DNA of 64,000 nt from Cycas panzhihuaensis (lineage: Eukaryota > Plantae > Cycadophyta): positions 222,649,741-222,713,740 of the forward strand of contig CM041465.1 in the NCBI GenBank assembly GCA_023213395.1. Direction: 5' to 3'. The position numbers were made by a program, and so were the translations under genes. Below the pieces are notes generated by a model. It saw nothing but the letters and a program-made list of their open reading frames with translations, ran no database searches and was not told the origin of the DNA. Positions 7,940 through 42,560 of this stretch are shown piece after piece. Numbering within the stretch: position 1 is the first letter of the stretch; every line of letters starts with the position of its first letter.

Positions 7940-8010
7940 TGGAATTGTACCTTTGGGGGGGTTACTAAACTCAAACAGGATCAAGCTAAATAACTAATGG
8001 TTTTAGGTGG

Positions 8011-10726: not shown

Positions 10727-10727
10727 C

Positions 10728-10746
10728 TGGTGACCATACTAGGGAC
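10728..10746 (+). promoter_or_regulatory. Primer binding site of B, probably tRNA-Arg
   Basis: TGGTGACCATACTAGGGA 1 nt after the LTR. It resembles the TGGCGAC(T/C)...GGGA Arg-type PBS of Tat/Ogre elements after deamination. Confidence 0.75.
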
Positions 10747-10916
10747 TACCAGTAAGGGAGCTAGTTTCCGCTCTCTTCTGTTAGTTTTGCTGCCTTTTGT
10801 GGTCCTTTTCCTACTTCGATCTCTTCGTTGGGCAGCCCCCAACGTGTGTACCTTTACCACCCTTTCCTTTTCCTAACATTGTTGGCTGACCTTGCATGCG
10901 ACGCTTTTCTTGTTGC

Positions 10917-13900
10917 TTGCGCGGTCTACCTCCATTGTTAGAAGACCCTGAGTATCGCCCTCTTCCCTTGTCAGATACTGATTTGACTATGGAGGGATAC
11001 TCTTCTGATTAGGCCTACCACACCTCAACTTTGGAAACCCATGATTTCCCTTCCTCTATTTTGGGGTCCACCCAAGAGGGTGATGACCCCCTTTACTACC
11101 CGAGTGACCAACATCACTTGCTCAACATCCATCCCTCTACTCATGCGGTAGAAGGATTTGTTCCTCTTGAGACTTACCACTCAATCAGTGACTCTTATGA
11201 GGAGCATCCCAAGGGATCTACTTCGTTTGAGGTCCCAACTACCTCTTACGAGTATGTAGGAACCCCTCCTATCGATGTAGTTGAAGCTCTCAATGAGTGT
11301 CGCCACACGGCACGCTTCCAACCGCATCCTGGATGGTTTGAGGATGCTCTCCATATAGGAGCCTCTTCTTCTTCCGCTCCTCCCTCGTGTGCTTCATCCT
11401 CATCTACTCTTCCGGTGACGACCAATCCCTTTATGCCTATGCATGTGTCCTACTCCTTTCCTATTCCTGTAGTGGGGGCACATATTGCACCTTCTGTTTC
11501 TCACCAAGGTCCTAGTGTTTCGGGATCTTCCCGCGATATGTCTTTCCCCAAGTTGAAGGTTAGTATACCCATCCCTAGACAAACTAATGTGCCATCCCCT
11601 AATATGGCACATACCTTTCCTAGTAGGCATGTCGGTCCTACTAACCTTTCGGCTATCAGTCATGTGGGACCTGCTCCCATACACCCTCAAAACCAACACC
11701 TTGGTGCTTCCTTCTACGTTTCCCCAGGGTATACTTCTCAACCTTGGGGGCAGGGTAGAGGAAGCCATCTCCTAGCTTATGGAGTGGATCCGTTACACCC
11801 ATATGGGGTCGCCTGTTTCCCAGCTAGTGGGAATGGACTCGGGACGCATCGACACAGGTTTGTGCAGGTATATGTTCTTACTTTTCTTACTTATGGTTGC
11901 TAAGGGAATTCAGAATAGTTTGATTGACATGTGCCTGCCTACATGCATTTGTTTGATTGCCTGTTCATAATGCATGTGCCTAACGGCACCTCTTAGCCTA
12001 TGACGACTCACAGCGGGGGCATCCATAAGCGGATCCGACACCGTATGGCGTCTGACCACTCACGATGTCTCCATGGTCTTTCGGGATGCTTTTGCCAGCT
12101 TGTTTATTCGTGTTACCACGTGCCACTTATGTTGCAAACCCTTCCTAAGCCTGGTTTAACCCTTAGTTAGGGCTCTTTGCACCATTTTGAGTACTTGCCC
12201 ACTGCCTGAGCCTTCCCCCAGTTGATGTATTTCAGGCTTAGCCCCTGTTCTTACCCTAAAAACTGATTTTTTATGACTTTCATGTTGCATTTTCTTCTTT
12301 TTTGAGTTTGGTGATGCGGTAAACTAAGCGATCATGATTTTCTGTGATCTGCCAAGTTTCATGCAGACGACTGTTCAAAATTTGAAAAAAGAAACCACTG
12401 ACGATGGCGCGTTTTCGGGCTATGCGTGGCTCACGAGCAGTTGGGCGCGAGGCCCCAACGTTCACTTGCTATGCCCAAGGCATAAAAGCCTTTTTTTCAC
12501 TCATTTTGATGAATTCTTCAACTCACTTTTCAAGACTCCCAAGAAAAAACTCTCTATTAGAAACCAAAAGAAAGAGTGACAAGAAAGCTTCTCCTCATGA
12601 GCTTGGACAGAGATACAGAGGCTGCTATTAGGCTGGAGTTGCGGGGCCATTCTTTGCCCCTCGGAGACTCCATTACAAGCACCATCTCTCCTCACAAAGA
12701 TCCAAGGCTTCAAGAGGTTTTCTTCATCAAAATCCATTCCAAAGACACATTCTCAAGCTCCCAACTTGCATAAGGCTCTACTCTTCCACTCTCATGCAAA
12801 GGACATTCAACTCCACTTCTTGGACACCGCTTGATGCCCCCCTAAGTTGCTAAGTGCCTACATGCACTCATTCTTCTCCATTCAAGGTATTTATTGGCTC
12901 TATTAGTGCTTTTTTTGCTTGTTTTTTCCATTGAGTTGCTTGCAAATTCTTTCCTCTTGTTTGCATGCACTTCCTTTGAGTTTCTTTTGGCCGTTTGATA
13001 TATATAACCTTAGTAGTTGTGGCTTACTAAATGACGCCTTAGGTTAGGCGCATTTTTCTTGTGATTTCCTAAAACTCATCCTCTCCCACCGAGTTCCCTC
13101 TTTTGCCATTTTCTAAGCTAGCCGGCATAAAGGGATTTTACGAGGATTTGAGGGAGATAGGCGGGGTTCCGTCCCCCATTGCCGTCCTTCTCCCCAAGGG
13201 TTCCGTCCCTTATCCTCTCTCCCTTTATCACCCGCGCTTTCTTAGGAGACGGGGCTAGAGAAACCTTGGAGGGTTGGCTTGAGTTTCCTCATTGGCGTAG
13301 GCCATTTGTTATCACACGACCCATCTTGTTGCATGCTAGCATTGTTTCCCTATACCCTGTGGAGACCTCTCGTGGGTGAGTTAGCCATCCCGAGGCTACA
13401 CTCAATCCTATTCAGTGCATTTTATGGTGTATGACTAGCATATGTGTCGCGGCTTCGTTTCCTTTCCATTATATGTGGGTGCTTAACTACGTCTGGCTAG
13501 CCTAGTTGATTTCATTTTCAGCATATACATATACATATATCTCGTCGGTTTTGGTAGCCTCTCTCCAGGAGGAGGTGTTCTCCTGGTTGTGTGCGGGATC
13601 GCTTGAGAGGGAGGGGTGTGCGAGGTCAACCCGTTCTTGGGTCCGACCGTCACGAGTCGCCTTTCCCTTTTTTTTGGTTGTTTTGAGCTTTACTTTCCGT
13701 TCTTTCAGTTTGTTAGTTCTTGCATGCTCTCGGGGAGGTAAGTGAACCCCCCTTCGACGCCTTTGATCGACGTTGCATGCGCGGAAGACGGAGGGAAGGA
13801 GCGCGACCGAGGCTCGGACTCCGTGTCCAGGTATTTCCCGCGTGTCTTTCGTGTTTACTTTGTGTTTTTACGCTTCGTTGCATTTACTTTGATCTGTAAA

Positions 13901-15517
13901 GGAACATAAGAAAAAAAAGAAAACAAATCGTTTACTTTACATTTGCTTTCTTGTACTTCTTTATTACATTGCATGACATAGTAGTGTAGGTCCCATTTAC
14001 CTATACCCCTTAGCCACACTTACCCCTTACTACGTGACACGTTTGGTTGATCGCCCCCGCGTCGCCTCCCCATTGCCTTGAGAAGCCGCGGACGTCGAGG
14101 TTCTTTTCCCCTTCCCGCCATCCGAAGGGTAGGAAGGCCTCGTCTTGCACGGCCACAGAAGCAACCCGGGCACCTTGCGATCCGTGCACTCCGCTCCGGC
14201 GCACGGACGTCCTGCGAGGTATGATCCTTGCTAGTTAGCCTGCTTAGCATATTGTTTCTATGCCCTTCTCGCTAGGCGTTGGATCATTGCCCCGCGGAGA
14301 GCGTTTCATCGCCCCACCTACAGGCGGCCCATATTGGCAAAACTCGGTTCCGCATCCATCTTTTCCATCATCTAGTGTAATTCCTTTTGCTGTGCCTTCA
14401 CAAGGGAACCTGATTCCCTTCCAAGGCACTTATCCTCAAGTCCCTCTCGTGAGGCATTTCCTCAAGGAGGGATAGGTGTGCCACCCCCATTCGCTCCTTG
14501 TTCACTTCCTACTACGTCATTTGTTGACCCTATGGTCCAGGCAAGGGCACGCCCCTTCATGGACTTTAGGTCAACACCTCTATCCATTGAGGCGTTAAGA
14601 ACCAATATGTCGCCTCATCCCCCTGAAGTTCCAGATTCGACGGAGCTTCGTCGCAAGACCCGACGGAGTATGTGCGTAGCTTTTTTATGGCATACATCAA
14701 TTACTGGGCTTATAACTACATTCTAATGAAATTCTTCCTGCGATCCTTATAGGATGATGCCCTTAAGTGTTTTTACCGTCTCCCTGCCCACTCCATCCAT
14801 TCATTCCAGCAATTGGTGGACGAGTTCATCAACTATTTTGATGTAGCCCGTCCATTCGAGAGTAGAATGAAGTCACTCCTTTCGCTCAAACAAGGTCACG
14901 ATGAAATGAATCGTGACTTTGTATGGCGATTTCATGACTTGCTTCACTCTACTAAGGTAATATTACCCAAGGAGTTAAAGTGAGATCTCTTTGTCAATGC
15001 ACTTCGTCCCAAAGTACATGTGGAAGTCCTTAAAATGGGGGCGACCACATGTGACTCCGCGATCACCAAGTGTTTGGCATTGGAGGCTATTGAGATCCAA
15101 GCTGGTCTCAAGAAACCTCTTAAGCCCTTACAGCGACGTGAGGCACCACCTTCAACCAAAGATACCAAACCTTCACAACCTACCTAGTCTTCCTCCCATC
15201 CGACTGAGAGGACCTTAGACCCGCTCACATCAGCCATATGCTCATTTGAGCATACAATGAAGGAGCTCAAGCTTCAAGCTCCTTCATCCCCTACATCTAA
15301 TAAACAAGTCCAGCAAACAACTCAAGCTCCTCTCCCCAGGAATGGAAATGCCCAGTCCTCTCAAGTGAGGAGGTCAGTCCCCCCACTTGAGAAGAAGTGG
15401 TGCTCCATTCATGGGGAGTGCTTTCACGATGACTCACGTTGTAGGGCCCAGCATCCTAAGGATGCCCCTCGATGCGACTCTTCCTCTAAACAGGCCTCAA
15501 GGCCTAATTTAGACTAA
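10917..15517 (+). pseudogene. gag of element B, split by solo LTR D
   Basis: Long P/S-rich ORF 11031-11813 resumes in frame after D (HPYGVA|PPTGGPYWQ); retrotransposon gag core ~14600-15100; Tat-type CX2HX4HX4C knuckle WCSIHGECFHDDSRC (~15395-15445). Start position uncertain. Confidence 0.85.
11814..14308 (+). mobile_element. Solo LTR D (2495 bp), Tat-type family related to B
   Basis: TGTTTCCCAGCTAGTGGGAATGG...GTTTCA with perfect TSD TCGCC (11809-11813, 14309-14313); retains many CpGs. Confidence 0.93.
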
Positions 15518-15939
15518 CCAGTTCATAAGGATTTGTTCCCTAAACATGGGGAACGCGATCGTAACACCTAAACCAAGAATAACTAGAGCTGAGGAAGATC
15601 GCCTAATTCTCGTCCTTCCCACAACAAAGGGAAGGGTGCCGAGGACTCGTCCTCTTCCTCTCGTTCCCCTAGCCATCGTATCCCATCACCTTTGCAACCC
15701 CGGAACAAGGGGAAGAAGGTGATCCAGTTGCTTGAGGCAACTCCTTCTTATGCCCTTACACGGTCTCAGGCCGCCAAGGAAGCGGCAGGAGCTTCTTCTT
15801 CTTCTGCTCCTTCCGACCCTCTTCCGGAGAACCTTCCCCTGGAAATACTTCTCTTCCCCAAGGCTATTCATGTATGCCCAGGTCGTTACGATTTCTGAAG
15901 GGCACTTACTCAGCCTACCGCAAAGGGTAAGCCCTTCTC

Positions 15940-18900
15940 CATCGTGGACAAGCTTCATACGGTTGCCGCAGGAATGTCCTTGATGGATGTTTTGAGGAGT
16001 TATCCTAAGCAGCGGACCCTCCTCTTGGAAGCTTTAGGATCGAATGACGCACCTGTCCATGCTTTAGGCGTTACCCAAAGTTGTGGACCTGTTATTTCGT
16101 TTGATCCTAAGGACCTTCCTCCCACTGGTGAAAGGGAACGTCAGTGGAACTTCCCATTCACTATCACTATCGATACACCTAATTGTACCCTTCGAAGGAC
16201 TGTTGTTGACAACGGTTCTTCCGTGAATGCCATGCCCTTGCATGTCATGCAAGAGCTTGGTATTTTCGCCTTTGAACCTATTCCATGGTGATGCCAAGGT
16301 TATGACAGTAGTGAAGAGACCCCTTTGGGATCTATCACGATTCCGCTCACCCTTAAGGGCAAGACTATTCTTGCCGATGTCGTAGTCCTCGACGTTGACG
16401 TCGACTACAACCTCCTTCTAGGTCATCCATGGCTTGACCAAATGGGAGCCGTGTGCTCGATTCTTTGGGGACAACTTAAGTTTGTCCATGACGGGCAGAT
16501 GAGAGTGATTCCCCGCGAACGCCCATTCACCAAACAAACTCCTTCTACAAATTCGGCAAACTGAGGTCCTTCTACACACGCCTTGGCTTGCTCTATTGGC
16601 ATACATAACCCATCTGAAGAAGATCCTACATCTTCTTCCCCTAGTCTCATGTGGTTCGCCTCTATTGGCGTTGGGAGTTACGGGTACCTCGCTTCGTTTA
16701 GTGATGACGAGTCACACGACGAGGATGAGGATTGTCTTTACCCCGTCTCTTTCCTCTGCACCAATAGGTCACACCTATCTCGTTCTAGATCCCCGTCTAG
16801 AACCTCTTTCCTTGGTGAGGCTAGCCACTCCTACATATCACATGTCATTGCTTGTGTTGACCCGCCCATCGTTAGTTCTTCTCCTTCATTATCCCCCGTA
16901 GGTGATGGCTTCGAAGAACTGCTTTTTGCTCCTTCTGAGGAGCCTCTTTTTGACTCTCCTTCAGAGTCTCACGAGGAAGTTGAGCAACCCAACGACCATC
17001 ACAGTCCTGTTGCTTCCACTCCCTCTAGTACTTCCTTTACTGGAAGTAAGGTCATCCATGGGGTGGATTACTTCGAGGATGATGAAGCCCTACTCGAGCA
17101 CCTAGCAGGCTTTACACTTGGCTTTCCTTCTAGTCACCACAAGCTTGGTCACTAGAAGGTCCTTGCGATTGGATCCACACTTGCTGATCTGATCCAGTCT
17201 CCTATTCCACCCCCTCCTGTTGACCTTGCCCCTCTCCACTTCGAGGAGGGCAATGCCATGTGCATGGGGGCAACCCAAGACATAGTCTTGGCCCCCGGCA
17301 AGGTCATTAAGGTTAGGTTGGAGTGTTTTCCTGATAAGATAAGGGAGTACTCTCTTCTGTTCCAGGAGTTTCGAGACATGTTTGCATGGGATTATGCTGA
17401 CATAAAGGGAATTGACCCCTCCATTATCACTTATAACCTCACCACCATTCCTGGCGCCCGCCCTGTGCGCTAGAAGCAGCGTCCCCTTCACCTGAAGCTC
17501 TCAGCCACCGTCAAGATGGAGGTTGAGAAGCTTCTGGATGCTGGGCTTATTACTTCCATTGATTACCCTAAATGGGTCTCCAATATTATCCCCGTTGCTA
17601 AAAAGAATGGGGCAATTCGTATATGTGTCGATTTCTGTGACATCAATAATGCTTGTCCTAAGGACAACTTCCCACTCCCCTTTATCGACTAAATTATTGA
17701 TCGCACTGCTGGATTTAAAGTTATGTCTCTAATGGATGGCTTCTTCGGCTATAACCAAATTCAGATTTCTCCTAAAGATCGCCATAAGACGACCTTCACT
17801 ACACCTTGGGGTACCTTTGCCTACAAGGCGATGCCTTTTGGTCTTAAGAATGCAGGTGCTACTTACCAAAGAGCCATGCATTTTATTTTCCATGACCTCA
17901 TTGATAACACATTGGAGGTCTTTATGGATGATATGATGGGTCTCTCCCGTGTCAAGGCCCACCATCCATCTGACTTGCATGCCATCTTCTCACGATGCTA
18001 CAAGTATCACGTCAGTCTAAATCCGCTCAAGTGTGTGTTTGCCGTTACCTCGGGTAAACTCCTTGGGTTCCTTGTATCCAAACAAGGAATTCAAATTGAT
18101 CCTGACAAGGTCAGGGCAATCCTTAATATGTCACCACCTAGAACCCAATGACAGATTAAGTCATTTCTAGGAAGGCTCAATTTTCTCAGGCACTTCTTAG
18201 CAGACTTCGTTGTGACCGCTAAACCCCTCACGAACCTATTGAAGAAGGGAGCTCCTTTTGCTTGGTCTGACAAGACCCAAAAGGCCTTTGAAGGACTCAA
18301 GGAAGCCCTTGCTTTCGCTCCTACACTGGCACCTCCTTGATTCGATAGGCCCTTCGTCCTGTACACCTTAGTGACTGACGAGTTCTTGGGTGCTATGTTA
18401 GCTCAGAAGGATGACTCAGGAACCGAGAGAGCTATATATTTCATCAGCCGCACCCTCGTGGCTGCTGAACTTAACTATTCTCCTGCTAAGAAGGAGTGCC
18501 TCTCCTTGGTCCATGCGACCAAGAAGTTTTGACACTACTTGCTTGGTAACACCACCAAGGTGATCATTCAATCTGATCCCTTGCGATACTTGCTCACTCA
18601 TTCGGATTTGACGGGTAGGGCCGGTCGATGGGCCGTCCTGCTTCAAGCATTTGACCCCCATATCGTTAACTGAAAATCAGAGAAGGGAATGGTAGTGGCC
18701 AAGCTACTCGCAGACGCCCCTATCCCTAACTTCTTTGGCGCCCCCGTTGATGACTGTCTTCCCGATGAGTCTATCCGAACAATTCAGGGGGTCTCTTCCC
18801 ATCTACTCATCGATAATGAGTGGTATGGTAATATAGTGTGGTATCTTACACAGTAGCAATACCGCCTCGATGCCAGTAGTAAAGTTAGATCTCGCATCCA

Positions 18901-19180
18901 GACTTCTACCAGGCAATACCTCCTCATGGACGAGGTATTGTACAAGAGGTCCTTCGATGGGATCCTCCTCCGCTGCGTCACTGACTTGTGACCAAATGCC
19001 AGCGAATGCCATCATGGTATTTATGGAGGTCACTTTGGGGGCTAGTCTATAGCTCAGAGGATCCTTTGCATGGGTTATTTCTGACCGTCCCTTTTCAAGG
19101 ACGCTCATGCCTTTGCTCTGAGATGTCGGCGGTGTCAAGAACACACCAACATCTCCCATGTGCCTTCTGAGGCCATCCAC
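15940..19180 (+). pseudogene. pol of element B: protease, linker, RT, RNase H, integrase N-terminus (truncated)
   Basis: PR VVDNGSSVNAM and YNLLLGHPWL; RT SLMDGFFGYNQI, MPFGLKNAGATYQRAM, FMDD, LNPLKCVF; RH ~18330-18720; integrase zinc finger H.GIYGGHF...CRRCQ ~19010-19140. The sequence then changes abruptly and no DDE core follows. Confidence 0.93.
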
Positions 19181-19383
19181 ACATGATATATACATAACGT
19201 CTCATACCAAAATGGAGTTCTAATTACCCCATATATATATACAATAAAGAATATTATGTTGCATCATACATATGGGAAGTCGGTGTCCTTGCAGGGGGTA
19301 CAATTATATAACCCTATATATGACCCCCTAGAGGCCCGTGCTTTCTCTTGTTAAAGTCAATATGCATATCTCCTACTCTACTG

Positions 19384-21771
19384 CTACCCCGCTCCTAGGG
19401 TACCATCTCCCAGTCTGTGTGATCCCTCTCCTGAGGACCACATCCCTCTGAGGCTCCTCCTGGGCCTCTGCGAGCCACCTGCCTGGCTCCCCTCATCCCG
19501 TGGTCATCTCGAGGTCATCACTGCTGTGTAGGTATATGTCCTGCTCTGGCTTGACCTCGACGCCATCTGGGCCACCAGTTGATCGTATCGGGGTTGGATA
19601 CGATCTCTCTCTCCTCGGAGTCCCTCCTCCTTCACTCTGAGGTGCTCCTCTAGTACTGCTATCCGGACCCTGCTCTTGGCATCTTCGCCTTCTCCTCCCT
19701 GTGCCTCTAGGGCCTGAACCCGTCCACGTAGCTCGTCCCTCTCGCGCCTCACCTCATCTAGCTCCTACTGCAGCTGTCCCTGAAATATCATGTGCTCCTG
19801 GGATTCTGCGGCCCAAATGTCTCTTGCCCTCACCAACGGGGCAAATGCCTCCATGTGGGCACCTACCGCTCTAGGCGCATCCCCTGCCTGGATGGGCGGT
19901 TACCCCTCTGCATACACCTGAGGGAATATCTCCCTCACCACAGCCTCTACCAGTCTCTGAACCTCTACTACACCTGCCAATACAAAATGCCATGTGTCAA
20001 TATATATCCCACCACATACCATGATCAAATCAAAACAAATATCCATCTGGATGTCAAACGACTCAGGAAAAGGTTAGGTCTCACTTGCTGCGGCTGCCGG
20101 CTCCTCTGGTCGTGCAATATCCTCCCCTCCTGGCTCTCCTCCAGCTGCGAGTGCCTTATCCTCGGGCACCTCCTCTGCCTGGGCCTCCCTCCTTGCAGGG
20201 ATTGGCTTAGCTCTCGTCCCTCCGGATCCCCACATGATCTATAGCCTGCGGGCCCTGGTCATTAGCCCCTTGCTCTCATCCGGCGCTCCTTATGGGCCGG
20301 CCTCTCCTCCGGCAGCCCCGGATGGTCCCGTTACTCCTCCTGCCGTCCTTGAAGGACCTGCCTCCCCTGCAAGTCGTGACGAGCCGGCCCCATCATCATC
20401 GTCGTCATCATTTGTAGGCGGTCCTGCTCTGCCCACCTCGTCATCATTATCCCACCTCACCGTCCTGTATGGCTCTACTATGTAGTCTGGTAGGGTGAGG
20501 AGGTTCAGCGATGTCGCCTCCACTGATCATCAGAAATGGGCCTCATCCTCTATCCCTCTCAGCCGAGTCTACCACCTGTGGACCATCGGGGCTCGCTCTG
20601 CTATGGGGTGTGGTCCCCCTGCTGGTGCCACTGCCGTGAAATGATCAAAGAACTAGCACTGTAGTAGCGTGTTATATGATAGCCCTCCTCTGTCGGTCAT
20701 CCTGATAGCGTTTAGCTGTGCGACAAGGTTTGCTGCTATCAGGGTGGCCCAGTCCATCCTCTCACTGGCTTCGCAGCAGCATACTACATCCAACCAGCCA
20801 CCCAGTATCTCCCTATAATTCTGCTTTCGGGAAATCCAGAACAGAATGCATAATACAATCAGTTTCCTCACCCGAGGAACTCTGAACATCAGCATGGTCT
20901 GGAGGGGAGCTCCCCTCCACTACCACTTGTCAGCCCCTGTGAAGAATAGGGCTGCCTCTCTGTGTGCTACCTTGGTGCTAGGCAGCATTCCTAGTGTTAC
21001 CGGCCTCCCATTCGCCGGTACCCCCAGTATCCATCGTATGTCTCTTGGTGTAACCACCACATCACCTACTTGAGGTAGGTGGAATACATGTCTCCTCCTA
21101 TCATAATGGGATACGATGTCGACCAATAACCTCTGATCTGATGCATATTGAGGTGTTTTCAAGGCCTTGTATAGGCGGCACCTCCGCAGGGTCTCCCTGT
21201 CCTCCTCGAACGCCATCTCCATATAGCTTAACATAGCCATACCTACATTCTCGTGGTTATCCACTGCGATGACAGCCTATCCACATCAAAAATGATCAAA
21301 GTCAATTGTTAGCACTCATGACTCTCTCTCAACTCTCTCTGTCTGAGATTTGGGGCCTTGTGGCCCCTCCTATCCTTTTTTCTCTTTTTCTGCCTTCGTA
21401 CCGCGCTAAACTTAGCGGTACCGCTAAGTTTAGCTCGGGTCCCATGGAGATTCGAGCCCCGCGGTAATGAATATGGCACTGTGATCTTTGCCACGATACG
21501 AACGGCGACCCCCCGAAAGGGGGCATTCCCGCCGCGAAAAATTAAAAAAAAATCTTCTGGTGGACCCCGTGGGGCCCACCGGGACCAGGGCTCCCTAATG
21601 CCCGGGTCCCCGCCTCTTTCTGGGTCTGATTCAGACTCCAAGAGGCCTCCAATTGCCCGTAAGGGGAACTAAAATCATACAAAAAACTATAAAAAACCAC
21701 TGAAATTAAAGCTCTGAAACGGGTTGGCTTTAGTGATATCCACTCACTGGATCCGGTCTCGCTGTCGCCAT
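19384..21771 (-). pseudogene. Antisense 3-exon gene: plant mobile domain (PMD) + acidic linker + coiled coil, ~600 aa; exons 21771-21748, 21276-20085, 19973-19384
   Basis: PMD motifs LVDIVSHYDRRRHVFHLPQVGDVVVTPRDIRWILGVPANGRPV, MDWATLIAANL, LLQC*FFDHF, PMVHRW. Four track ORFs lie in one frame. Canonical GTGAG donors and AG acceptors have matching phases. The internal stops read are explicable as C>T/G>A changes. The exact C-terminal stop is uncertain. Confidence 0.85.
21405..21434. repeat. Perfect 30-bp palindrome GCTAAACTTAGCGGTACCGCTAAGTTTAGC in intron 1 of the PMD gene
   Basis: Self reverse-complement, checked base by base. Confidence 0.95.
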
Positions 21772-21930
21772 CTCGTCCTGACGATCCCGCTAGCTCTCTC
21801 CGCTCTCCGATCCAACGGTCCGATCTCTCCCCGCGTGCCTCCAAAGTTGGGTGGCGCTCCACTGCATACGGGAATGGCTCTGGTTTCTCACGAGAGCCGG
21901 TGAAAATGAATCCATTTTCCGTTCGATTTC

Positions 21931-21940
21931 CTTATATAGG
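21931..21940 (-). promoter_or_regulatory. TATA box (CCTATATAAG) of the antisense PMD gene
   Basis: Canonical plant TATA about 160 nt upstream of the ATG at 21771, in a GC/CpG-rich context. Confidence 0.65.
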
Positions 21941-22458
21941 CGGGGGCCCCAACGGGCACTTCTTCCGTTTTTGGCTCTGCGACAGCCGTTGAGACCGTCC
22001 TATTTCCCTGATTGCCTTTGCCTTCTAGCCCTGTTACCCATTGTACTCTCTTAACACCCTTTTTGTGCTTTCTCGTAGGTGCATTTATGGTGCCTCATTT
22101 TTGCACTTTTTCCTTGGGCCCTTTTGTCTCGTTTTGTGTGCCACTCCCGTGCATGCTTGAGTTTATATTCGTTTGGCTCGTTTTGTCGCCCTGGACTCAT
22201 TTTCACAGTCCTTTTTCGCTCCTGGGGTCCCCAAAGGGGATGCTCCCCCGTCCGGGGGCATGTTTCGCTTTCTAAAGCAACCCTTTTGGGGCTCTAGGAT
22301 GTTTTTTTCCTCTGACTGCTCTCTGATGGTGATCGGACTGCTTGCTCTTGCCCTAGGTAACCTCATTGCTAGGTCCTCCTACCCTTCACGGCTACTTGTT
22401 ACTTGCCTTTTGAGTATCACTTTCGTTGTTTATTGACTACCAAGACTTTGTGTCACCC

Positions 22459-22881
22459 ATGTCCATCTACATTTTTACCGACGACGGAAGCCGCGGTAAC
22501 CCTGGACCTTCTACCACTGCATGGATTCTCCGTAGCCCTTCTAGACACAATCTCTTGTGCTCTGGGATCTTCCTCCCAGAGGCTACTAACAACAAAGCTG
22601 AGTATACAGCTGTAATTGAAGCCCTTACCGATGCTCCCTGTTCTCATCATGGATCCATCGTTTTGCTTTGTGACTCTCAAGTTGTGGTGTCTCATCTCAC
22701 CTAAGTTTACCAGGTGTGATGCCCTCACTTGAGGACTCTTGCTTCCACCGCCAGATCTCTCCTGGCCTGCTTCTCTTCTGTCGATATCCAGCATATCCCT
22801 CGGGCCCTCAACGTTAAGGCAGATAGCCTCGTTCACCTCATCTTTGAGCATCGCCTTCCCCTCCTTGTTGACCGTCCCTAA
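22459..22881 (+). pseudogene. Free-standing additional (archaeal-type) RNase H, aRH, 140 aa
   Basis: MSIYIFTDDGSRGNPGP...ATNNKAEYTAVIEAL...LCDSQVVV...IQHIPRALNVKADSL: D/E/D/D catalytic set with R in the HIPR motif. Two in-frame stops (22702 TAA, 22717 TGA), no frameshift. Confidence 0.9.
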
Positions 22882-23284
22882 GGCTTGCCTGGCCGCCCTG
22901 TCGCCTAAGCCCCAAGTCATCTTACACTTTGCTTTGGGACCCATTCGCACCTCTGAGAACCGACCGCTAATGAGGTTAAACTATGGTGCCTACCCCTTGC
23001 TTACTCTTTTACTTGATTATGCACGTCTTTCTACATCTTTTGTGGTGGGGGTAGCCCCCTCGCCTTTTTTATTTTTCCAGTCGGTTCCCAGGTGGCTCAT
23101 AGGTAGCCCTTATGTTGTTTCCACCACTGCTTTCGTATCCACGCGTTCCACCACAACACTTACTAGCACCCTTGCCTGCTGTTATGATCTTGATTTATAT
23201 ATTTATATACATATGTGCTACTGACAGTTGTGTTGCCAACACTCGCCATCGCACCACGCTTTCAAGCAGCGAGGCTCTGCTACC

Positions 23285-23294
23285 AAGGGGGCAG
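23285..23294 (+). promoter_or_regulatory. Polypurine tract of B
   Basis: AAGGGGGCAG immediately before the 3' LTR TG. Confidence 0.85.
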
Positions 23295-25993
23295 TGTTTC
23301 CCAGCTTCCGGGAATGGATACAGAATTACCGACTCAAGTAAGTGCAAGTATGCTTCTCACCCTATCATCGCTTTCTTTTGGTGAGTGTTTGCTTGTATGT
23401 TTGTATGTTGTGACCTTGTAGATGATTTTGTCTTCGTCTACCCTTACTTAGCCTATGACGACTATAGCGAGGGCACACTCCCAGTGAGTGTGGCACCCCG
23501 GTGGCCATTCCACTTCCCGCATTCTGCCCTACTCACTCCAGGATCCACTTGGCTTGTGCCACCTCTGCCCATGTAATGACTCGTCATTGTTGGTTGACTT
23601 GCCACATCGTTTGAATCCTATTTTTGCTCTTCTAGACTTGTTTATTGGCTTGTTTGCCCTCGGGTAGATGTCTCGGCCCCTTATTTGCCTTTTTTTTGTC
23701 ATTAGCCCACCAGTGGTTGTCGAGCGATTTTGCCTCGGTGAATCTGCAGTAAATTTCACGATGCCAGTAAATTCTGATGCAGATTTTGCGGTGGGATGAC
23801 TATCTATACTTATTTTTTTAAAAACTGCCATGGCAATTTCGCATTTATTGCGAAATTGCCACATGTCTCGCGACTTGACTCGCCTCCAACTGTGCCCTAA
23901 TCGCTCGCTTTAGGGCTTGGGCTAGGTATTTAAGTCGTCACTAACTCATTTTTAGGATCTTTTGTTCATTTTTGGATTGCTCCTTAAGGAAAACACCCTG
24001 TGCTCTGTTGTTCTCTACTGATCTACTCTTCTCAGACACACACCTCTCCTCCAAAGGCTCTCCTTTGATACAGCTAGGACATCTTCCCAACCCTTCACAC
24101 GCCTTGGAGAGGGCCCCTTTAGAGAGATCTCAGCAGATTCTTGCTCAGGCAGCCATCAAGCATTCTAAGTGCAAGTGTTCTTCCTCCAACTCCATTAGCA
24201 GGGTTCCAAGCCTGCCATTCCATAGTTTCTGTGTTGATTTCTCAGCCTCTCTTTAGCAGCCCTTGACTGAGGCAAGATCCTCCCCTCCCCTTCTCAGGTA
24301 TTCATTAATTTGAGCTACTTTCTTATTCAATTGATGCCCTATTTTGCTTGTCCTCTTGCTTAGGTTTTTGGAGGTTGGTTTTTCCTTTGTATTGGACTGT
24401 TTTACTCCTGTCATTAGTGAATCCCTGCCTGCATTTATTGTTCAAGGCAATGGAAAAGAGGGGTTGCATAGGGTTTGGGAGAGAGTTGGGTGGATTTCGT
24501 ACCACCTTCCACACTCCTCAAGTGGCTCTTAGCCCCCCAAACCTTCCCTCTTGCCCAATGTTGTCCTTGGCACTCAAACAAGGGTTTGTTAGGCCTTCCT
24601 TAGCCGCTGAAATCAGCGTTGTCACACGTTGCAGCACTGGTTTGAGGGCTTGTGCTTCGATCCGGGTAACTCATGTAAGTCCCGAATACTTGCCCTTTGC
24701 CCAACTCCTTTCCCCAGCAACCCAGTTTGCTCTTCATAGCACCCCAGCTTGCTGTAGGTCCTCTTTGGCTCTTTTCAACCCTCTTTGCTACTGTTTCCAG
24801 CCATCTTTCTCAGCCTTACCCTCGCTGCCTCGTGGCTTTTGGGGGAGATTGGGGTTGTTCTTTACAAGAGGTGGGCCACTCCGAGGTTTTCTGGTTACTT
24901 TCCATTTACTTTGGTTGTCCTCCTTTACATACTACCATCATTATATTGATACTAACATACACTTAGTTAAGTTTATATTCACTTTGCATATACATGTATT
25001 GTTAGGATCTTTCCATTGTATGCTAGCACCCTTTCTCCGAAAAAAGGGGGGGATTGTCATTCACTTGTAGGTATTTGGGAAGTGCAATGGATTCGTCCCT
25101 CTTTCTTCCTTGGTAGGTGAGTGCTCTTGTCTATGCTTTACTTTCGCACTTCATTTATTGTTAACATTTTGTTCTTTTCCTTCCTTTGTTTGGTACTTTA
25201 GTACTTTTTCCGGGGAAGGTAAGGGAGCCCCTTGTTCTGATCCGTCGTGACTCTTCATGACCACTGCGCCTTATGGAGTGGCTTTGAGCGCCTCTTGGGA
25301 GAGTCACCATTACGACACGCTTCAGTCCTAGGTACACGCTTTCGCTTCACTTCATCACCTTTTCCTTATGAGTTCTTTACATATTAGTAATTAGCTCATT
25401 GAAAATAGAAAGGAAATCAACCTTGCTTTGGTTCATACTTTATTTACTTTATTGCTTGCATCTTCTTTTGCCATAGGAAAAGGTTTTAGGAAACTTTCCT
25501 CCTCACCTTTTCCCTTCTTCTGCCATGCAAACTTCCCTCTCTCCTTATTATTTGTTTATTCAGTTAGTTTGCTTACACATACCTTAACCCATTTTCTTGG
25601 ATTATCCCTCTTCTGTCCTCTTGGTTCCCCGCTTAGCCGGATAACTGAGGTGACCCCATCCATAGGCCACCTACTTGCCTACCCTTCCTCGTCTCCCGTT
25701 GCTCTAGGGAAACCCTCGAAGGGTTCGCTCCTTCCCCTTCCGGCCATCCAAGGGTGGGAGGATCCTTCCCTTAGGTCAACTCAGGCTAACCCTATGCCTC
25801 ATCACCTCTTGTTCGAAGTGAGGGGATCACTCTTTGGTAGATATATTCCATTTGCAGGTCCCAAACTCGCGCTCCGGTGCACAGGGTACCCTGCGTGGTA
25901 CTTGCCCTACTTGTAGGTCTTTTCCCCATCATATTATCAATCGCTCTTACCATTCCTACTTAGTTAGGTAGCTATCCCGTAGATGCGTATCCA
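23295..25993 (+). repeat. 3' LTR of element B
   Basis: TGTTTCCCAGCTTCC...GTATCCA followed by TSD GGTGG. Confidence 0.97.
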
Positions 25994-28900
25994 GGTGGCT
26001 ATGGACCTATGATGGCAAGCGAAAGAAACCACCCAAAAAAGGTGTTTGTACATCATAATGCAAGTTTGGGACCTGCAAATGGTGCACAAACTACTTTAAG
26101 GCAACTCTTCCTCGATTTGGAATGGTGGATAGATGAGGGATCTCCTCAGTTTCTCGAGTAACCTCAAAAGGGGCCCTCACGTCCTTAGTTGGCTAAAGGA
26201 GGGAGGAAAGAGGTGAGGGAATGGCTCATTGCGCAAAGGAGAGAACACACATATGTAAGCTTAAGGTGGCTTACAACGTGAGTGGTCAAGAGGATGGCTA
26301 GTTTCACAAGCTAGACGTGGACATTAAGACAAAACTAGGGAAGTCTAGCCTAGAGAAATAAGAAACATAAAGTAAACGACCTTGGGAGGGGGGCTCTCAA
26401 GGTGCCAAACCTAAGGAGGATCCTAGGAGCAACAAATCAACAAGAAGGGTTGTCTTTGTATTTGCCTTTGTTTAGTATATGATAAAGAAATGTAAAGTGA
26501 GGGTGTGGTGTATATGCTAATGTTGTGTCTTTATGTTTAAAACAAATTATTTTTAGAGGCAAGAAAGTAATGCAAATCTCTCTCTCATTTACTTATGCAT
26601 GCAACCTCACTCTCCTTTGTCTTTTTAGAGGCAAGAATGGGAGATCAAAGAGATCGTTATGTGACACAAAGCTCATGCAAAAGGGTGCAAAGCTACTAGG
26701 TGACAATGCAATGAAATTGGAGGGGCACACACATGCAGGTGCCTAGTTTTCCACTATATGAGCTTTGCAAAGAAACAAGTAAGTGAAGTGCAAGAAATCC
26801 AAACTAATCTTTTTCTTTCCTTTTTTCTAGAATGACATTCAAAAGAGGGGGGAAAGAGTAAGGAGAAGAAGCCTAGAAAAAGGGAGATATACCCAAAATG
26901 TGGCAGGCAAAGTAGCATTACCCTTACCACGCTTTCGATCCTTGCCCTTCTCCTAACTATGGATGGCGCAACGAGAGGAGTGACGGTGAAGGAGGGGGCT
27001 TCCTTACCTTCCCCCAAAATCAAAAGGAAAAAAGGAAATGTAGCACAAGAGAATGTAAAGATGCTTGCACCTCTACTTTACAACTTTGAAAGCAAAAGAA
27101 AGTAACTATTGAAGGGAGCGTAATTTACCTGAGACGAAGTCCCTTTTTTCTCTAAGTGCAATAGAAAACCTGCAACCAAACGAGGTGTTCCCTTTCCTAA
27201 GGGGCACCAAACATATGCGAGATAGATATGCAATATGGAAAGTGACAGGATGTAACTATCTTAATTAAAAGAAATATATTCAACACCAATATCACTCCTT
27301 ATGCTTCGCATGTTATTTAGTATGTAATATGGGAAAAAATGGAGGAAAGAGAAAGGAGGGTGGTGGTTAGCCTTGGAATGGATAACCCTCCAAATCAAAG
27401 GTGCTCCACATTGCCCCCAAGTACCAAGATGAAGGGAGGAACAAATGCAAACTAACTTCTCAGAATACAAGCAATGACGGTAAGAAATGTTAGAAACGTT
27501 GCCAATGTTGTAGAAGTTGCAACACGCAACTTTTGCAAGTTTCGCAAAAGTTTAGAACCAAGGGACAAGAGAATATAGAGTGGGGGCCAAAACCCCACCC
27601 ATGTAGGATCTGCTAGGCTAGTTGCAAGCGCAGCAATGGGTTGCCTACGCTGCTACAAGTAATGATCTATCTTCCAATGGTCATTTAGGAACTCAAGGGA
27701 GGTATGGAGAAGGGAGAGGTGAGGAGAGAAGGGGGTTGCCCTTGAGGAGAAGGCTTGTGGGGTGCAGGACCCCACCTTTAGCTCCTTTCACTCTCCATAG
27801 GTGCCTCTCCCTTGCTGCCTCCTCGAAGAAACTAGGAAGGAGCCAAAAGAAGGAGAAGACAAGTAAAAAGGGGAGGGTTTGCCTCCTGTTTGCAATAGAA
27901 AGAAAGAGAAATTTGTTGTAAAAAAGTATTGGCAAGTAGTATTTATGTTACTCAAAGGAAAGAAAGTAAAGGCTTGACCATGAGGTACCTATTATAGGTA
28001 GATCTACCTATGAAATTGAATGGAGAAGCAAACCCTATAGGATTTGCAGGAGAAAACCCCAATAGTGCAGTAAATAGGAAGAAAATTGGAGCAAGAAAGG
28101 TAGTTGGAACTTGATGGAGCATTTGGAGCACGTTCTTCTCTTGGCTGGCCATGTTGTAGGCCTACAACTGCGTGTCTGGATCTGCAAGAGGCTGGTAGCT
28201 GGATGAGAAGTAGATGTAGCAGACTTGGTCCTATTTACAAGGTGCTTTTAGAGGAAGTAGTGGAAAAATGAGTGAAAGAGAGATAAAATCGAGCTATTAG
28301 GGTTTGGCTTGGGCCAAAGACAAGTCATTGCCACATGGTAATTTTGCAATAAATGTGAAATTAGCTATGGTAAATTTAAAAACTAACTGTGGACAGTCGC
28401 CCCCCGGTAAACTTAGTGGTACCGCAAAGTTTGTAGCAGTACTGTGAAGTTTAACACGGTGCAGCAGAAGCAAAGAGAAAAGCAAAGGAAGAGAAGCTTG
28501 GAAGCTCCAAAAGAGGGGAAACTCATGCCCAAAGAACCATGATACTCTGTCCAGGTGGTGGGAAGGAGTTGTGGGGCTTAGAGAGGCCATAGCGAATAAG
28601 TAATGAAGGTGAAAGGTTCCCCAAAAAGATAACAAATGGACACAGGACGACAACCAAGCCTAGGCGGGGTGCTAGGGGTCATGATACGCCGATGGGTGAT
28701 GTGATTAGGCTACAGAAGCCAAATGGTACTTGGGAGTGTTTTGGAGGCAAGGAGGAGGGTTGTGGAGTGCCATAGGATATGTATCCCTAGACCATCATAG
28801 GCTAAAAAAGTGTAGAGATGCAGTATGGTCAGGCAAACAAATGAGAAGTGATCATGCAGTCAATCAATCAGAATGCAATGCAGGTAAAGTACCTCGATCC

Positions 28901-28998: not shown

Positions 28999-31900
28999 AT
29001 ACTTATATCATAGTCATAAAAGAGTACATTCAAATGCACCAAAGAACTATGAAAATTTTAAACCTCAAAGATGCAATATGAATAGCCAAAGTAGTTGAGG
29101 CAAAATTTATAATAAAAAGAACATCTTTCTTCTAGTGAGATACTACATGGCACTAACAATCGTGATAAGCTAAATTCCCATGAAGACAACCCTAGGTGAA
29201 TGACTTACATGGACTTGCTATGAAATGGCCTTTAGAGTAACCCATAAATAAGCCAATTCAAGTCCCATCAGTAAAGGTGTATCGATACATTACAATCGGT
29301 CTTTATGTCTAATGCTTAGAAAAGTAAACCCCTAGACATAGTAAAGTTTACAAAGCCAAGAAAATGATCTTCACAAGAGATCCTAATCTATCCCTAAAAG
29401 ATGATTTTGATTCTGAACTAAAATTTGATGAAAACCCTATATAGAACCCCCTTCTACTTTAGAACCAAAAGTCTCCTTATCTGCAATAGCATCCTCTTTG
29501 TGTCTTGAACCACTACACATCAAAGGAATACTTTAGAAAATACCAATTACTATTTTGATTAATGGTGACTTATCGATAAACTTCATAGATATTTCCTTGG
29601 CTAAATAATTAAATCTTTATATTGCCCAACAAATTGGATTCATATGTTCTGTGCCCAACCATTATAAACTTTATTGTGCTGAAACAATCAAGAAACTCAC
29701 CATCCAAAATGATATTTGTAGGCAAAGCTCTAATTTTTATGCCCTGTCTATTAGTGGATTAGATGTTACTCTTGACATCCAATGGATTAAAAAATTAGGT
29801 ATCTATAATATAAATAAGTCCTCTGCCAATCCATTCATCTTATTTAAGGACCAAAAGGAATAAATATATAAACTTAATGAAATATAACCCCACCCCTAAA
29901 TAAACTAATTTCTCTAAACTAAATGTGAAAATAATTAAGCAGCCAAGTAGGCTATATTGTATGCATCAACAACACCCAAGCCCATATATACATTTACCCA
30001 GATATCCAACACATCCTTCATAAATATCAAGTTAATATTTCCCCCTCTATCAGCTAGTCCCCCAATAGATCACAGGTGTTACTATACCATTGAGCTCAAA
30101 AATCCCTACAACCCTATTAGTCTTTGACCCTATAGAAATTTCTACTTTCAAAAGAATAAAATTTTTTAAATTACTAATGAGTTAATAAAAATGGAGGTAA
30201 TTCAACCTAGCAAAAGCCCATGTGTTGCCTATATTATATTTGCTCAAGATAAGGATGGCTCATTTAGGCTCTATGTTGATTATCAAAAATTGAATAAAAT
30301 AACAATAAAAAATAAGTTCCTTGGCCCAAGAATGGATGACATGTTAAAAGAAATCCATGGTGCCATAGTCTTTACCAAGTTGGATCTCTAATTCAGATAC
30401 TATCAAATCATAATTATACATAAAGATTGGCACAAAATGGCCTTCCATACACACCATGATTACTACAAATTCCATGTCATGCCTTTCCATTTATGCAATG
30501 CCTCTATCACATTTTAAATCCTAATGAACAAGGTGTTTGCCCCTTACCTTAGGAATTTTTTTTTTTTTTTTAATGATATTCTCATATATAGCACAAGCAT
30601 GGACATTCACACTCGCCATTTAGTGACAATCCTAAAAAATTTAGCTAAACACCAATTATATGGCAAGCTTTCCAAGTATGAGTTTCATAAGTCTAAACTA
30701 TAATACCTTAGCCACATTATCTCTATAAAAAGTGTTTAGGTTTACCCTAATAAGATAGTGGTTATTACCAACTAGCCAACCCCAAAAAGTCTTTACCTAG
30801 TTGCATGCCTTCTTAGGACTCATATAATTCTATAGGTAGTTCGTTTAGAATTATACAACCTTAATGACACCATTAACCAAATTACTCTAGAAATATTATT
30901 TATAATGGACACCCACTATTAATGATGTCTCCATTCATCTTAAAGAAATCATGTCCTCTACTCTAATCTTGGCCACATCGAACTTCTCTCAACCATTCCA
31001 ACTAGAATGTGATCAGGTTTTGGCTTCGGTGCAATCCTTATGCAAAACCTATACCTTATTACTTTTGAAAGTTGAAAACTTAAAGACCATAAGCGTAGGG
31101 TGTCAACCTACCAAAAAGAAATAGTGGTTATTTTCCATGCTATCAACAAATAGTGACAATATCTCATTGGATCAAAGTTCACCATCCTAATCAATCACCA
31201 TAGCCTCTACCACCTATTAGACCAATTGATTATGTCCAAAGAACAAGTCAAGTGGATGGAGCACCTCTAAGTTTTTTATTTAACAGTTGCTTATAAAAAA
31301 GGCCAAGATAATGTAATGGCAGATGCTCTTTCTTGCCTTCCAACTGACTCGTCCCTCATTCTTTTATATGAATACTCCATCCATGCCATCTCCACACCAC
31401 ATCCCATATAAGCATAAGACTTGGCTCAGGAAAACCAATCCCAATTAGATTATAACAAATAGGACAACAAAGTTCACACTAAAAAAATTGGTCCATATAA
31501 AACAATCTCCTTCTATATAAAAATCACATATTCATCCACCCAGCCTCTAACTTTATTCCTCAAATCTTAATAGAATACTAATATACTTCGTTAGGAGGCC
31601 ATTCCAAGTTTGACAAAATCTACTGATGAATTTATTCTAACTTCTATTAGTCACATATGAAATTATCCATTTTAACATTTATTTTATAATGCAATATGAG
31701 TCAGTGTAATAAAGCCAATACAAATGCCCAACCAAGTTTATTATAACTACTCCATATTCCACAAGGGAAATGGTAAGATATTGCCATGAACCTTGTTATG
31801 GATTCCCTCTATTTATCAAGTATGACTTCATATTAGTGGTCATTGACTGGTTGACAAAATACATATACTTTTTACCAATCCACATTTCATATAAAGTATC

Positions 31901-32815
31901 ATGCATTGTACATATGAATCTTCAAACAATATTTTATTTGCATGGTTTTCCATCAACTATAGTGTACAATTGAGATCTTAGGTTCACCAGCTTATTTTGG
32001 CAAGAGCTCTTTTGAGCTTTAGGTACATCATTCAATATGAATTCTACCTATCACCGCCAAACAAATGGATAATCTAAAGTTCTTAACAAAACACTAAAAA
32101 CTTACTTGTATTGTTATGCTTTTGAATACTAGACAAGATGGCCATCATTACTAACCCTAGTACAATATTAGTATAATTCTTTGAATCACCTAGCTATAAG
32201 AATGTCCCCATCCATGGCAATTTATGGGTACTTACCACCATCCCACCATACACAAGTAACCAACCTTCACATTGCGATAGTACAAGAAAAACTATAACAT
32301 ATGGATCAAATTTTAAATATCCTTAAGGAAAACCTAGTTACAACCCAAAATTGAATTAAGCAATTAATAGAGCACCACCATTCAGATCACTCCTTTGACA
32401 TTGGTGATCTTGTGTTCCTACGCCTTCAACCATATAAATAATAATATCTCAAACATCATAGGAATCCCAAACTCAATCCTCACTACTATGACCCTTATAA
32501 AGTCCTCCAATGTGTTAACGAAGTAGCTTATGCTTTGGAACTCCTACCCAATACCAAAATTCATATTATCTTCCATGTTTCTTATCTCAAAATATATATT
32601 GGCAAAGGCACAACCCCACAAACAGTCCTACCCATCTTGGATGAAGAGCAAACTCTTACTATTCCCTTAGAACGTATCTTGGATAATAGACAATGCCACC
32701 TCTAGAATAGGATAATTAGTAAGTATTTGGTACAATGAGTTGGTTACAAACCAGATGAGATGACTTGGGAATTAGTAGAAACATCCACATCTCCTTTGTT
32801 TTAGGGATTCAACAT
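28999..32815 (+). pseudogene. Remainder of A2 gag-pol (PR, RT, RH, INT, chromodomain)
   Basis: KDGSFRLYVDYQKLNKITIKNKF (30191-30391); ILVVIDWLTKYIYF (31770-31973); chromodomain ERILDNRQCHL...YLVQ*VGYKPDEMTWE (~32660-32790). Colinear with A1. Confidence 0.9.
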
Positions 32816-41769: not shown

Positions 41770-42560
41770 TTAGATAAATAATCCCTTGTTTTTAGCAATA
41801 GGACTTTGCATCAAGATATGTGGTGATATTATGGACAATGATATTGGAGTCAATACCAAGCATATCAATGTAATCCTAAGCAAAGATATTAGTGAATTCC
41901 TCAAAAAGTTTAATGTATTCTTATATTTTAAGAGGCAAATATTATACTCCAATCTTAACAATTTGAAGGGCTTCATCTATCAAAAGATTTATAACGATAG
42001 TCTCTCCCATAAGCATGGCATTCCTTTCCTCAAAATGAGGAAGTGCATCAATAAGTAAGGGAGAAGACCCTTCCATGGGAATATTCCCAACAAATAGAGG
42101 TAATAAACAATAAATGTAGTTTTAAAAATGTAATTCATGATGGCTATATAGAAGATTTATATGAGAATCAATTATATACTCCCTAGTGGCTTCATCATTC
42201 TCGAAATTATTAATATTAAAATAATGTCTTAACAATTGTGGTATGGTTGTGAGAAAGATGTCATCATAGTTTGTACTCTTCAATGACATGGAATTTTTTG
42301 TAGAAATATCATTCAAACTAGACAGAGCATTCGAAACAAGTGCTTATGAGAAAGAAGTCGATGCTTGAACATCAAGGGGTAAATCAATGATGATTTCTTC
42401 TTCAATAGAAGAATCAACATCAAGATTCTAAATTGGGGGAAAATAACATGATAAGAGAGTATGTGAACCCCATTATGGTTTCCAAAATGTTTCATATGGA
42501 AGGAGGGCTTGTTCTTCTAATATAAAGAAGTACTTAGAGCCAAGATAGATCCTAGAAGAA
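41770..42560 (-). pseudogene. Fragment of Tat pol (PR-RT linker and RT N-terminus) related to B
   Basis: EFTNIFA*DYIDMLGIDSNIIVHNITT vs B EFRDMFAWDYADIKGIDPSIITYNLTT; NNFENDEATREY vs B DYFEDDEALLEH. Confidence 0.75.

Follow-up and report, generated by a model that had tools for sequence, protein, structure and literature searches.

Decayed antisense PMD-coiled-coil and stand-alone RNase H genes in the probable 3' accessory region of a post-integrase Tat retrotransposon of Cycas panzhihuaensis

The stretch considered here, positions 19,384 to 22,881 of a 64,000-nucleotide window from the cycad Cycas panzhihuaensis (assembly GCA_023213395.1, contig CM041465.1, positions 222,649,741 to 222,713,740 of the forward strand; all coordinates below are those of this window), represents, with a probability of about 85%, the 3' accessory region of a "post-integrase" Tat retrotransposon, that is, of the type designated TatIII, structure #3 or Tat H/I, in a copy that is old, dead and integrase-deleted. 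Two accessory genes stand head to head in this region: a PMD-coiled-coil gene on the minus strand and a stand-alone gene for an archaeal-type RNase H (aRH) on the plus strand. Neither gene works in this copy, which has nine premature stops in the PMD-coiled-coil gene, two in the aRH gene, no integrase core and long terminal repeats (LTRs) that have diverged by ~10%. Neither the class nor either of the accessory genes is new, and what is described here is at most a variant gene order. The accessory region is composed of the following features, a slash marking the joints of candidate introns:

19504-19973, minus strand: putative last exon, coiled-coil region, with the terminal stop at 19506-19504 and in the same frame as the PMD block
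19974-20084, minus strand: candidate intron 2, 111 nt, phase 1, with the ends GTGAGA...TTGGCAG
20085-21276, minus strand: main coding block, PMD (~21276-20434) and acidic/Gly-rich linker, with 7 premature stops and no frameshift
21277-21747, minus strand: candidate intron 1 (471 nt), otherwise 5' untranslated region; donor CCA/GTGAGT, acceptor TAG/GCT, by sequence reading
21748-21771, minus strand: candidate first coding exon, ATG 21771 and 7 codons, by sequence reading
21772-22458, no strand assigned: head-to-head spacer, 687 bp, 51% G+C, with one TATA-like motif at 21930-21940
22459-22881, plus strand: solo aRH gene, 140 codons, from ATG 22459 to TAA 22879-22881; Pfam RNase_H and RVT_3

Tat elements possess an acquired archaeal-type RNase H beside the native one (PMC4408406, PMC6317226), and the element in question has both, a native RNase H (gRH) at 18341-18670 and the archaeal-type gene at 22459-22881. 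The latter is located downstream of integrase (INT) and outside pol, as in structure #3, with its open reading frame (ORF) broken by two stops. It begins 3.3 kb downstream of the integrase remnant, beyond the antisense gene and an in-frame stop (22411-22413, 15 codons upstream of the aRH ATG). No second aRH-type sequence was found in the element, and this includes the intervals between protease (PR) and reverse transcriptase (RT) and between native RNase H (RH) and INT, which an earlier note on this DNA, made from the letters, had likewise reported to be free of it. The same note had described a plus-strand aRH ORF of 140 amino acids; the ATG at 22459, the 140 codons and the RNase H domain stand, but the frame is not open, being interrupted by premature stops at 22702-22704 and 22717-22719. 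The N-terminal piece reaches 37.7 bits with RNase_H (cut-off 25.8) and 32.2 bits with RVT_3 (cut-off 21.6, RVT_3 positions 7-76), and the C-terminal piece 24 bits with RVT_3 (positions 85-121). The gene is collinear, without insertions or deletions, with free-standing RNase H proteins of ~140 amino acids and with the solo aRH of three intact relatives from metagenome contigs (L001, L007 and L015, see below). The catalytic D, E, D and D positions are kept, and the motifs TDDGS, NNKAEY, CDSQ and KADS lie at conserved columns; judged by these residues, the ancestral protein would have been a catalytically competent RNase H of type 1. From the present copy no activity is to be expected because of the two stops, and we regard the gene as a recently decayed stand-alone gene. 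A word-index protein search with an aRH piece returned only 140-amino-acid RNase H proteins with ~40% identity, none of which belongs to the family of this element.

Both accessory genes are part of a single Ty3/gypsy LTR retrotransposon of ~18 kb, which spans 8011-25993 of the window and contains, outside the accessory region, the following parts:

8011-10726, plus strand: 5' LTR with TG...CA ends (blastn of both element ends, boundaries by sequence reading)
~14753-15514, plus strand: gag, decayed; Pfam Retrotrans_gag
~16200-16561, plus strand: PR, decayed; Pfam RVP_2, weak
17474-18337, plus strand: RT, decayed; Pfam RVT_1, 3.3e-19
18341-18670, plus strand: gRH, decayed; Pfam RT_RNaseH, 9e-17
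18674-19180, plus strand: integrase remnant, zinc-binding (H2C2) part only (tblastn of the L001 and L007 polyproteins)
23285-23294, plus strand: polypurine tract (PPT) AAGGGGGCAG, adjoining the 3' LTR (sequence reading)
23295-25993, plus strand: 3' LTR with TG...CA ends (blastn of both element ends, boundaries by sequence reading)

The two LTRs are 89.7% identical across 2,719 columns (blastn, 5' versus 3' end), a 5-bp target-site duplication GGTGG is present at 8006-8010 and 25994-25998, and a TGG-type sequence resembling a primer-binding site (PBS), TGGTGACC, starts at ~10728, 3' of the 5' LTR. Since the ~10% diverged LTRs, the target-site duplication, the PBS and the PPT have all been found, the insertion is complete yet old, and together with the order gag-PR-RT-RH-INT these features identify it as a Ty3/gypsy element. 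Its G+C content of 47-56% sets it apart from the neighbouring DNA with ~30%. The pol residues 1128-1760 of L001 are collinear with the window at 45.6% identity up to position 19147 (tblastn), and the alignments of the L001 and L007 polyproteins stop at 19147-19180, which corresponds to the end of the Integrase_H2C2 domain in L001 (residues 1704-1759). The rve core (L001 residues 1778-1874) and the C-terminus of the integrase have no counterpart in the window in these tblastn comparisons, and the integrase pieces gave no match to a Pfam INT domain when searched. The truncation of the integrase recorded in the earlier note is thus borne out, the alignment to L001 pol ending at residue 1760, the end of H2C2.

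Between the integrase remnant and the PPT, where an antisense PMD/coiled-coil region had been proposed and is indeed found, a single frame of the minus strand, from 21276 to 19504, encodes a PMD followed by an acidic linker and a coiled coil and holds nearly all of the long stop-free segments. The Pfam domain PMD (PF10536) was detected on the piece 20923-21276 (minus strand) with E=1.5e-4 and 21.5 bits versus a cut-off of 34.9, and the remaining PMD pieces, which were searched separately because of the stops, gave no Pfam PMD match. Via the N-terminal piece, P0024 was found, an intact PMD-coiled-coil protein of 456 amino acids (Pfam PMD 85.7 bits, cut-off 34.9, residues 66-316), whose residues 58-309 match 21201-20434 in a single frame across five in-frame stops (tblastn, E=6e-15). 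Because P0024 aligns in one frame, the PMD domain is one uninterrupted block hit by nonsense substitutions and not a set of exons. Over the whole PMD-coiled-coil frame, nine premature stops (20922, 20655, 20571, 20532, 20529, 20292, 20241, 19902 and 19767) and zero frameshifts were counted. Two family fragments match the PMD block, P0015 (82% identical) and P0018, and the N-terminus of the PMD is 30% identical (E=2.4e-8) to P0020, 'Protein MAIN-LIKE 2 [Linum perenne]'. The coiled-coil exon gave only weak coiled-coil-type Pfam matches; the layout PMD-linker-coiled coil is also present in P0024 and, as an intact antisense ORF of 640 amino acids, in the metagenome locus L010. A metagenome scan with a PMD alignment found no loci. 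A related protein of different composition is P0026, a predicted protein of 550 amino acids on a Logan contig of 1,921 nt, in which a full PMD-coiled-coil part, a 90%-cluster mate of P0024, is preceded by an N-terminal region of ~95 residues that is RRM-like by eye and without a Pfam call; it could be a fusion of host and transposable element sequences or a chimeric transcript.

The earlier note had assigned three exons to the PMD gene. Two GT-AG introns (21747-21277 and 20084-19974) are indeed plausible from sequence signals, but the PMD domain itself is free of introns, and the frame has the nine stops mentioned above. Both candidates have canonical GT-AG ends and preserve frame and phase; the exons were searched separately, only the phase of the junctions being checked, with X placed at the stops. 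The acceptor of candidate intron 1, at 21277, coincides exactly with the opening of the PMD frame, and candidate intron 2 has a G+C content of 37%, with 56-58% in its flanks. The C-terminal halves of P0024, P0026 and L010 showed no significant alignment to the window and are therefore silent on intron 2. A reading of this AT-rich segment as coding sequence homologous to the C-terminal part of P0024 was dropped, the local alignments scoring below the shuffle mean. Upstream of the gene, the minus-strand TATA-like motif that had been noted before, CCTATATAAGG, was located at 21940-21930, ~160 nt upstream of ATG 21771, and this ATG is preceded by a short upstream ORF that starts at another ATG, at 21867. 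A perfect palindrome of 30 bp, centred on GGTACC, is situated at 21405-21434 within candidate intron 1; no second occurrence was found in the window with up to 3 mismatches allowed, and none in the LTRs of the element.

The spacer between the two genes measures 687 bp, in agreement with the separation of ~690 bp given earlier. Its description as GC-rich holds in comparison to the background of ~30%, but its 51% G+C equals the rest of the element. The ORFs in the spacer have no Pfam match, and small inverted and direct repeats occur in it. Six plus-strand ATGs are located between the TATA-like motif and the aRH ATG, and the leader implied by a start at this motif would be ~490 nt long.

The family context was analysed with Logan contigs from runs of three differently labelled species, ~100,000 contigs per run, which were compared with window positions 18600-23290, and with a further small run, X24, labelled as the same species as the best-matching run and RNA by guess only. 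The element family has a very high copy number in the three species, and every 157-nt bin of 18600-23290, including the junction between the integrase remnant and the PMD gene, is covered at family-level depth in all three of them. A 937-nt contig of X24 runs from candidate intron 1 through exon 1 and the TATA-like motif into the spacer, and two further X24 contigs bridge the spacer and the first aRH codons. As these bridging contigs are other copies, ~87% alike, the head-to-head junction is conserved. The evidence thus says that the PMD-coiled-coil/aRH pair is a feature of the family rather than a chance product of the present copy, and the earlier note was right in speaking of a Tat-type element with an accessory pair. 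These data bear directly on the alternative that the layout arose once, a nested insertion or a deletion or recombination having brought the PMD gene to its place between pol and aRH in one copy, the present one. The copy has been rearranged, as the loss of its integrase core demonstrates, and the relatives in the metagenome have no PMD gene between pol and aRH, both of which would fit such an event; however, the complete coverage of the bins at family depth, the contigs that bridge the PMD-side and the aRH-side junctions and the absence of extra LTRs or target-site duplications within the element make this explanation highly improbable.

Two further observations were made with the contigs. 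At ~1,090 places this copy differs from them, with C>T at ~200, T>C at ~193, G>A at ~170 and A>G at ~130 places, and with only 10-24 places for each type of transversion; the excess of transitions, together with the stops-only damage in both genes, fits a decay by cytosine deamination. In addition, the X24 contigs lie over the whole PMD-spacer-aRH cassette and are nearly absent from 18757-19227 at the end of pol, whereas in the three DNA runs the coverage of the two parts is similar. This unevenness could be due to expression or to subfamilies without pol, and contig depth cannot rank the parts of the element.

A metagenome scan with an RT alignment yielded 80 loci. The "retroviral" layout RT-gRH-aRH-INT prevails among them, and in two loci of this layout, L010 and L044, an antisense PMD gene occurs far downstream. 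L001, L007 and L015 are intact post-integrase elements. Each of them has a single gag-pol ORF of 1,717-2,063 amino acids (in L001 with the Pfam domains gag, protease, RT, RH, H2C2 and rve), followed 86-104 nt past the pol stop by a separate aRH ORF of 142-150 amino acids, with no PMD gene between the two. In a quick maximum likelihood tree of the RT-RH region of 75 metagenome loci and the window, which was midpoint-rooted for drawing only, the window is placed on a long branch as sister to the group of L001, L007 and L015 (SH-aLRT 99), and the window and this post-integrase group stand apart from 70 loci, of which 40 have the retroviral layout and the other 30 showed no aRH. Two other loci within the post-integrase group, L014 and L057, are rearranged fragments and uninformative. 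The nearest named RT fragments are from gene models of Ginkgo (60%) and from Taxus (58%).

These relatives decide one claim of the earlier note, namely that the intervening antisense gene uncouples aRH from pol. Because the aRH of L001, L007 and L015 is already solo without a PMD gene between it and pol, the PMD gene is not what uncouples the two, and the claim has to be given up: the stand-alone state of aRH predates the PMD gene lying between pol and aRH in the window and does not depend on it. The relatives also provide hints as to how a solo aRH could be expressed. Since the frames of pol and aRH differ in two of the three elements and stops separate them in all three, readthrough or frameshifting is unlikely. 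In all three, a pyrimidine-rich tract and a CAG directly precede the aRH ATG (L001:9696-9790, L007:5408-5514, L015:5574-5710), the junctions being TTGCAG/ATG, CCACAG/ATG and GAACAG/ATG. A CAG before the ATG resembles a splice acceptor and is not the start-codon context of plants. The CAG/ATG junction at the aRH start therefore suggests a 3' splice acceptor and a spliced subgenomic mRNA for aRH, as far as the sequence motifs go. The possibility that a short intron joins pol to aRH in these elements was also considered and rejected, there being no conserved GT before the pol stop.

For the post-integrase elements, two routes of aRH expression have to be weighed. According to the first, for which we see a tentative possibility, aRH is translated from an LTR-driven, spliced subgenomic sense RNA with an acceptor at the aRH start or immediately ahead of it, the antisense PMD gene being situated inside the spliced-out region. 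In favour of this route are the pyrimidine tract and the CAG before the aRH ATG in the three relatives, the different frames and the stops between pol and aRH in these elements, and the fact that splicing is known in the Tat clade from the Ogre intron (PMC6317226); on the other hand, only three related loci are concerned, two of which are close to each other, a donor was not found, and in the window copy the aRH ATG lacks an adjoining AG. The second route, advanced in the earlier note, treats the PMD-coiled-coil and aRH genes as a two-gene module transcribed divergently from an internal bidirectional promoter in the ~690-bp spacer. The head-to-head arrangement at a distance of 687 bp, a single near-palindromic TATA at 21930-21940 that could serve both strands, and the conservation of the junction in other copies (X24 records 11-13) would be in accord with it. 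However, a transcript from there would have six upstream ATGs in its ~490-nt leader before the aRH ATG, a contig of X24, which may be RNA, crosses the supposed promoter, and both genes are dead here; moreover, aRH does not need a bidirectional promoter, because the solo aRH of the relatives has neither an adjoining PMD gene nor the spacer. We consider this second route unlikely.

For the active ancestors, the following picture would result. A small free-standing gene for an archaeal-type RNase H would have been located behind pol, and its product would presumably have joined the native RH domain in supplying reverse transcription with RNase H activity. It would have been produced from a spliced subgenomic sense RNA, comparable to retroviral env, which we rank as likelier than expression from a shared bidirectional promoter. 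On the opposite strand, a PMD-linker-coiled-coil gene with its own promoter (TATA at 21930-21940) would probably have contained one or two introns. The template of retrotransposition is the sense RNA, in which antisense introns stay unspliced. Introns of an antisense gene can persist because the element replicates via this sense RNA, which does not splice them. The PMD protein would most likely act on chromatin or silencing, by analogy with the host proteins MAIN and MAIL1. A combination of these elements, in which post-integrase Tat elements express aRH from an env-like spliced RNA with an acceptor abutting the ATG, and in which an intron-bearing antisense PMD gene has settled in the spliced-out region, appears doubtful as a whole.

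Several observations weigh against the account given so far. The assignment to a named subclade (TatIII, Tat H or I) is based on structure and on a quick tree of metagenome contigs in which the window is long-branched, and it is to be taken as provisional to that extent. The aRH ATG of this copy is not directly preceded by an AG, and the nearest candidate acceptors, 15 and 45 nt upstream, are both weak. Neither candidate intron matches any joint among those listed for the Logan contigs, with 52 further joints outside the list, and run X24, RNA by guess only, shows no GT-AG joints; one of its contigs passes through candidate intron 1 unspliced. Finally, the intact relatives L010 and P0024 encode the PMD-coiled-coil protein without introns.

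The class to which we assign the element has been described in several steps. In a gymnosperm Tat lineage III, the archaeal RNase H (aRNH) was reported to stand 'at the very C-terminus' of Pol and a PMD eORF to be encoded in antisense 'at the 3'-end', the coiled coil being ascribed to later lineages only and lineage III having PMD only (PMC4408406, Ustyantsev et al. 2015). In REXdb, the TatIII elements have aRH after INT (PMC6317226, Neumann et al. 2019). A separate aRH ORF, structure #3, was found in Pinaceae, Ginkgo and Cycas panzhihuaensis, where it accounts for 68% of the Tat elements, and the question of how aRH functions from outside pol was posed (PMC10508981, Biryukov & Ustyantsev 2023). 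The 'post-integrase' layout with a 'solo aRH' was described most recently, and an earlier contradiction was noted (PMC13468544, Prokopeva et al. 2026). The statement of the earlier note that it did not know this architecture from the literature has to be restricted accordingly: the class is covered by PMC4408406, PMC10508981 and PMC13468544, and the texts do not explicitly state a placement of PMD between INT and aRH. PMD is not mentioned in the texts of PMC6317226, PMC10508981 and PMC13468544, nor are antisense genes in those of PMC10508981 and PMC13468544. The order INT-antisense PMD-aRH, a coiled coil in the post-integrase class and the candidate introns are stated in the text of none of the four papers (PMC4408406, PMC6317226, PMC10508981, PMC13468544), the figures of which may draw the order.

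With Tat lineage III/TatIII, the element shares its position among the Ty3/gypsy Tat elements, the PR in pol, an aRNH downstream of integrase and an antisense PMD ORF in the 3' part. It differs from this lineage in that the PMD gene lies between the INT remnant and aRH, that aRH is a separate ORF, whereas the text of 2015 has aRNH in the C-terminus of Pol, and that the antisense protein has a coiled coil; candidate introns do not occur in the 2015 text either. With structure #3 (Tat H in Pinaceae, Tat I in Cycas and Ginkgo) it shares the small separate aRH ORF behind pol, whereas in the structure #3 relatives L001, L007 and L015 aRH follows 86-104 nt past pol with nothing between, at the place where the window has the PMD gene. 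Retand/lineage V-type Tat elements resemble it in their antisense PMD-linker-coiled-coil gene (Kejnovsky 2006 and Steinbauerova 2011, as far as these are cited in PMC4408406; here L010 and L044), but the aRH of L010 and L044 is inside pol between gRH and INT and their PMD ORF is intron-less. The host PMD proteins (MAIN, MAIL1, MAIN-LIKE 2) have the Pfam domain PF10536 in common with the antisense protein, while their genes, unlike that of the window, lie outside LTR elements and lack the acidic linker and coiled-coil tail; the functional analogy used above is a matter of inference. Because the order in the window differs both from the text of 2015 and from L001, L007 and L015, the positions of PMD and aRH have been reshuffled within the post-integrase class.

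Some other features of the element and of its surroundings may be added. The distance of ~4 kb between the 5' LTR and gag (10727-14750) is unusually long and includes a stop-free stretch of 296 codons (11013-11900) with no Pfam match. In L001, the region upstream of gag (L001:986-2021) contains two short arrays of ~43-nt units, each of which starts with ATGCGCGGG and holds the complementary CGCGCAT, resulting in a hairpin-like structure. Elsewhere in the window there are other retroelement remains: a distant RT-RH-INT region at 2833-5220 (plus strand) shares ~27% identity with L001 pol, 31821-32537 (plus strand) holds an integrase-like fragment, and at 41804-42085 (minus strand) there is a short pol fragment whose alignment falls upstream of the RT domain.

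In its present form, one decayed copy of a published, gymnosperm-type class of Tat elements is a finding of little consequence. The published puzzle of how an RNase H encoded outside pol comes to be expressed and gets to the reverse-transcription complex can now be tested, namely as an acceptor at the aRH start versus an internal promoter. Either of these two routes of aRH expression, if true, would be of interest to specialists in retrotransposons. If the combined arrangement of an env-like spliced aRH RNA and an intron-bearing antisense gene were true, the same DNA would be an intron on one strand and a spliced, expressed gene on the other, and the question posed in 2023 (PMC10508981) of how an aRH located outside pol gets expressed would be answered.

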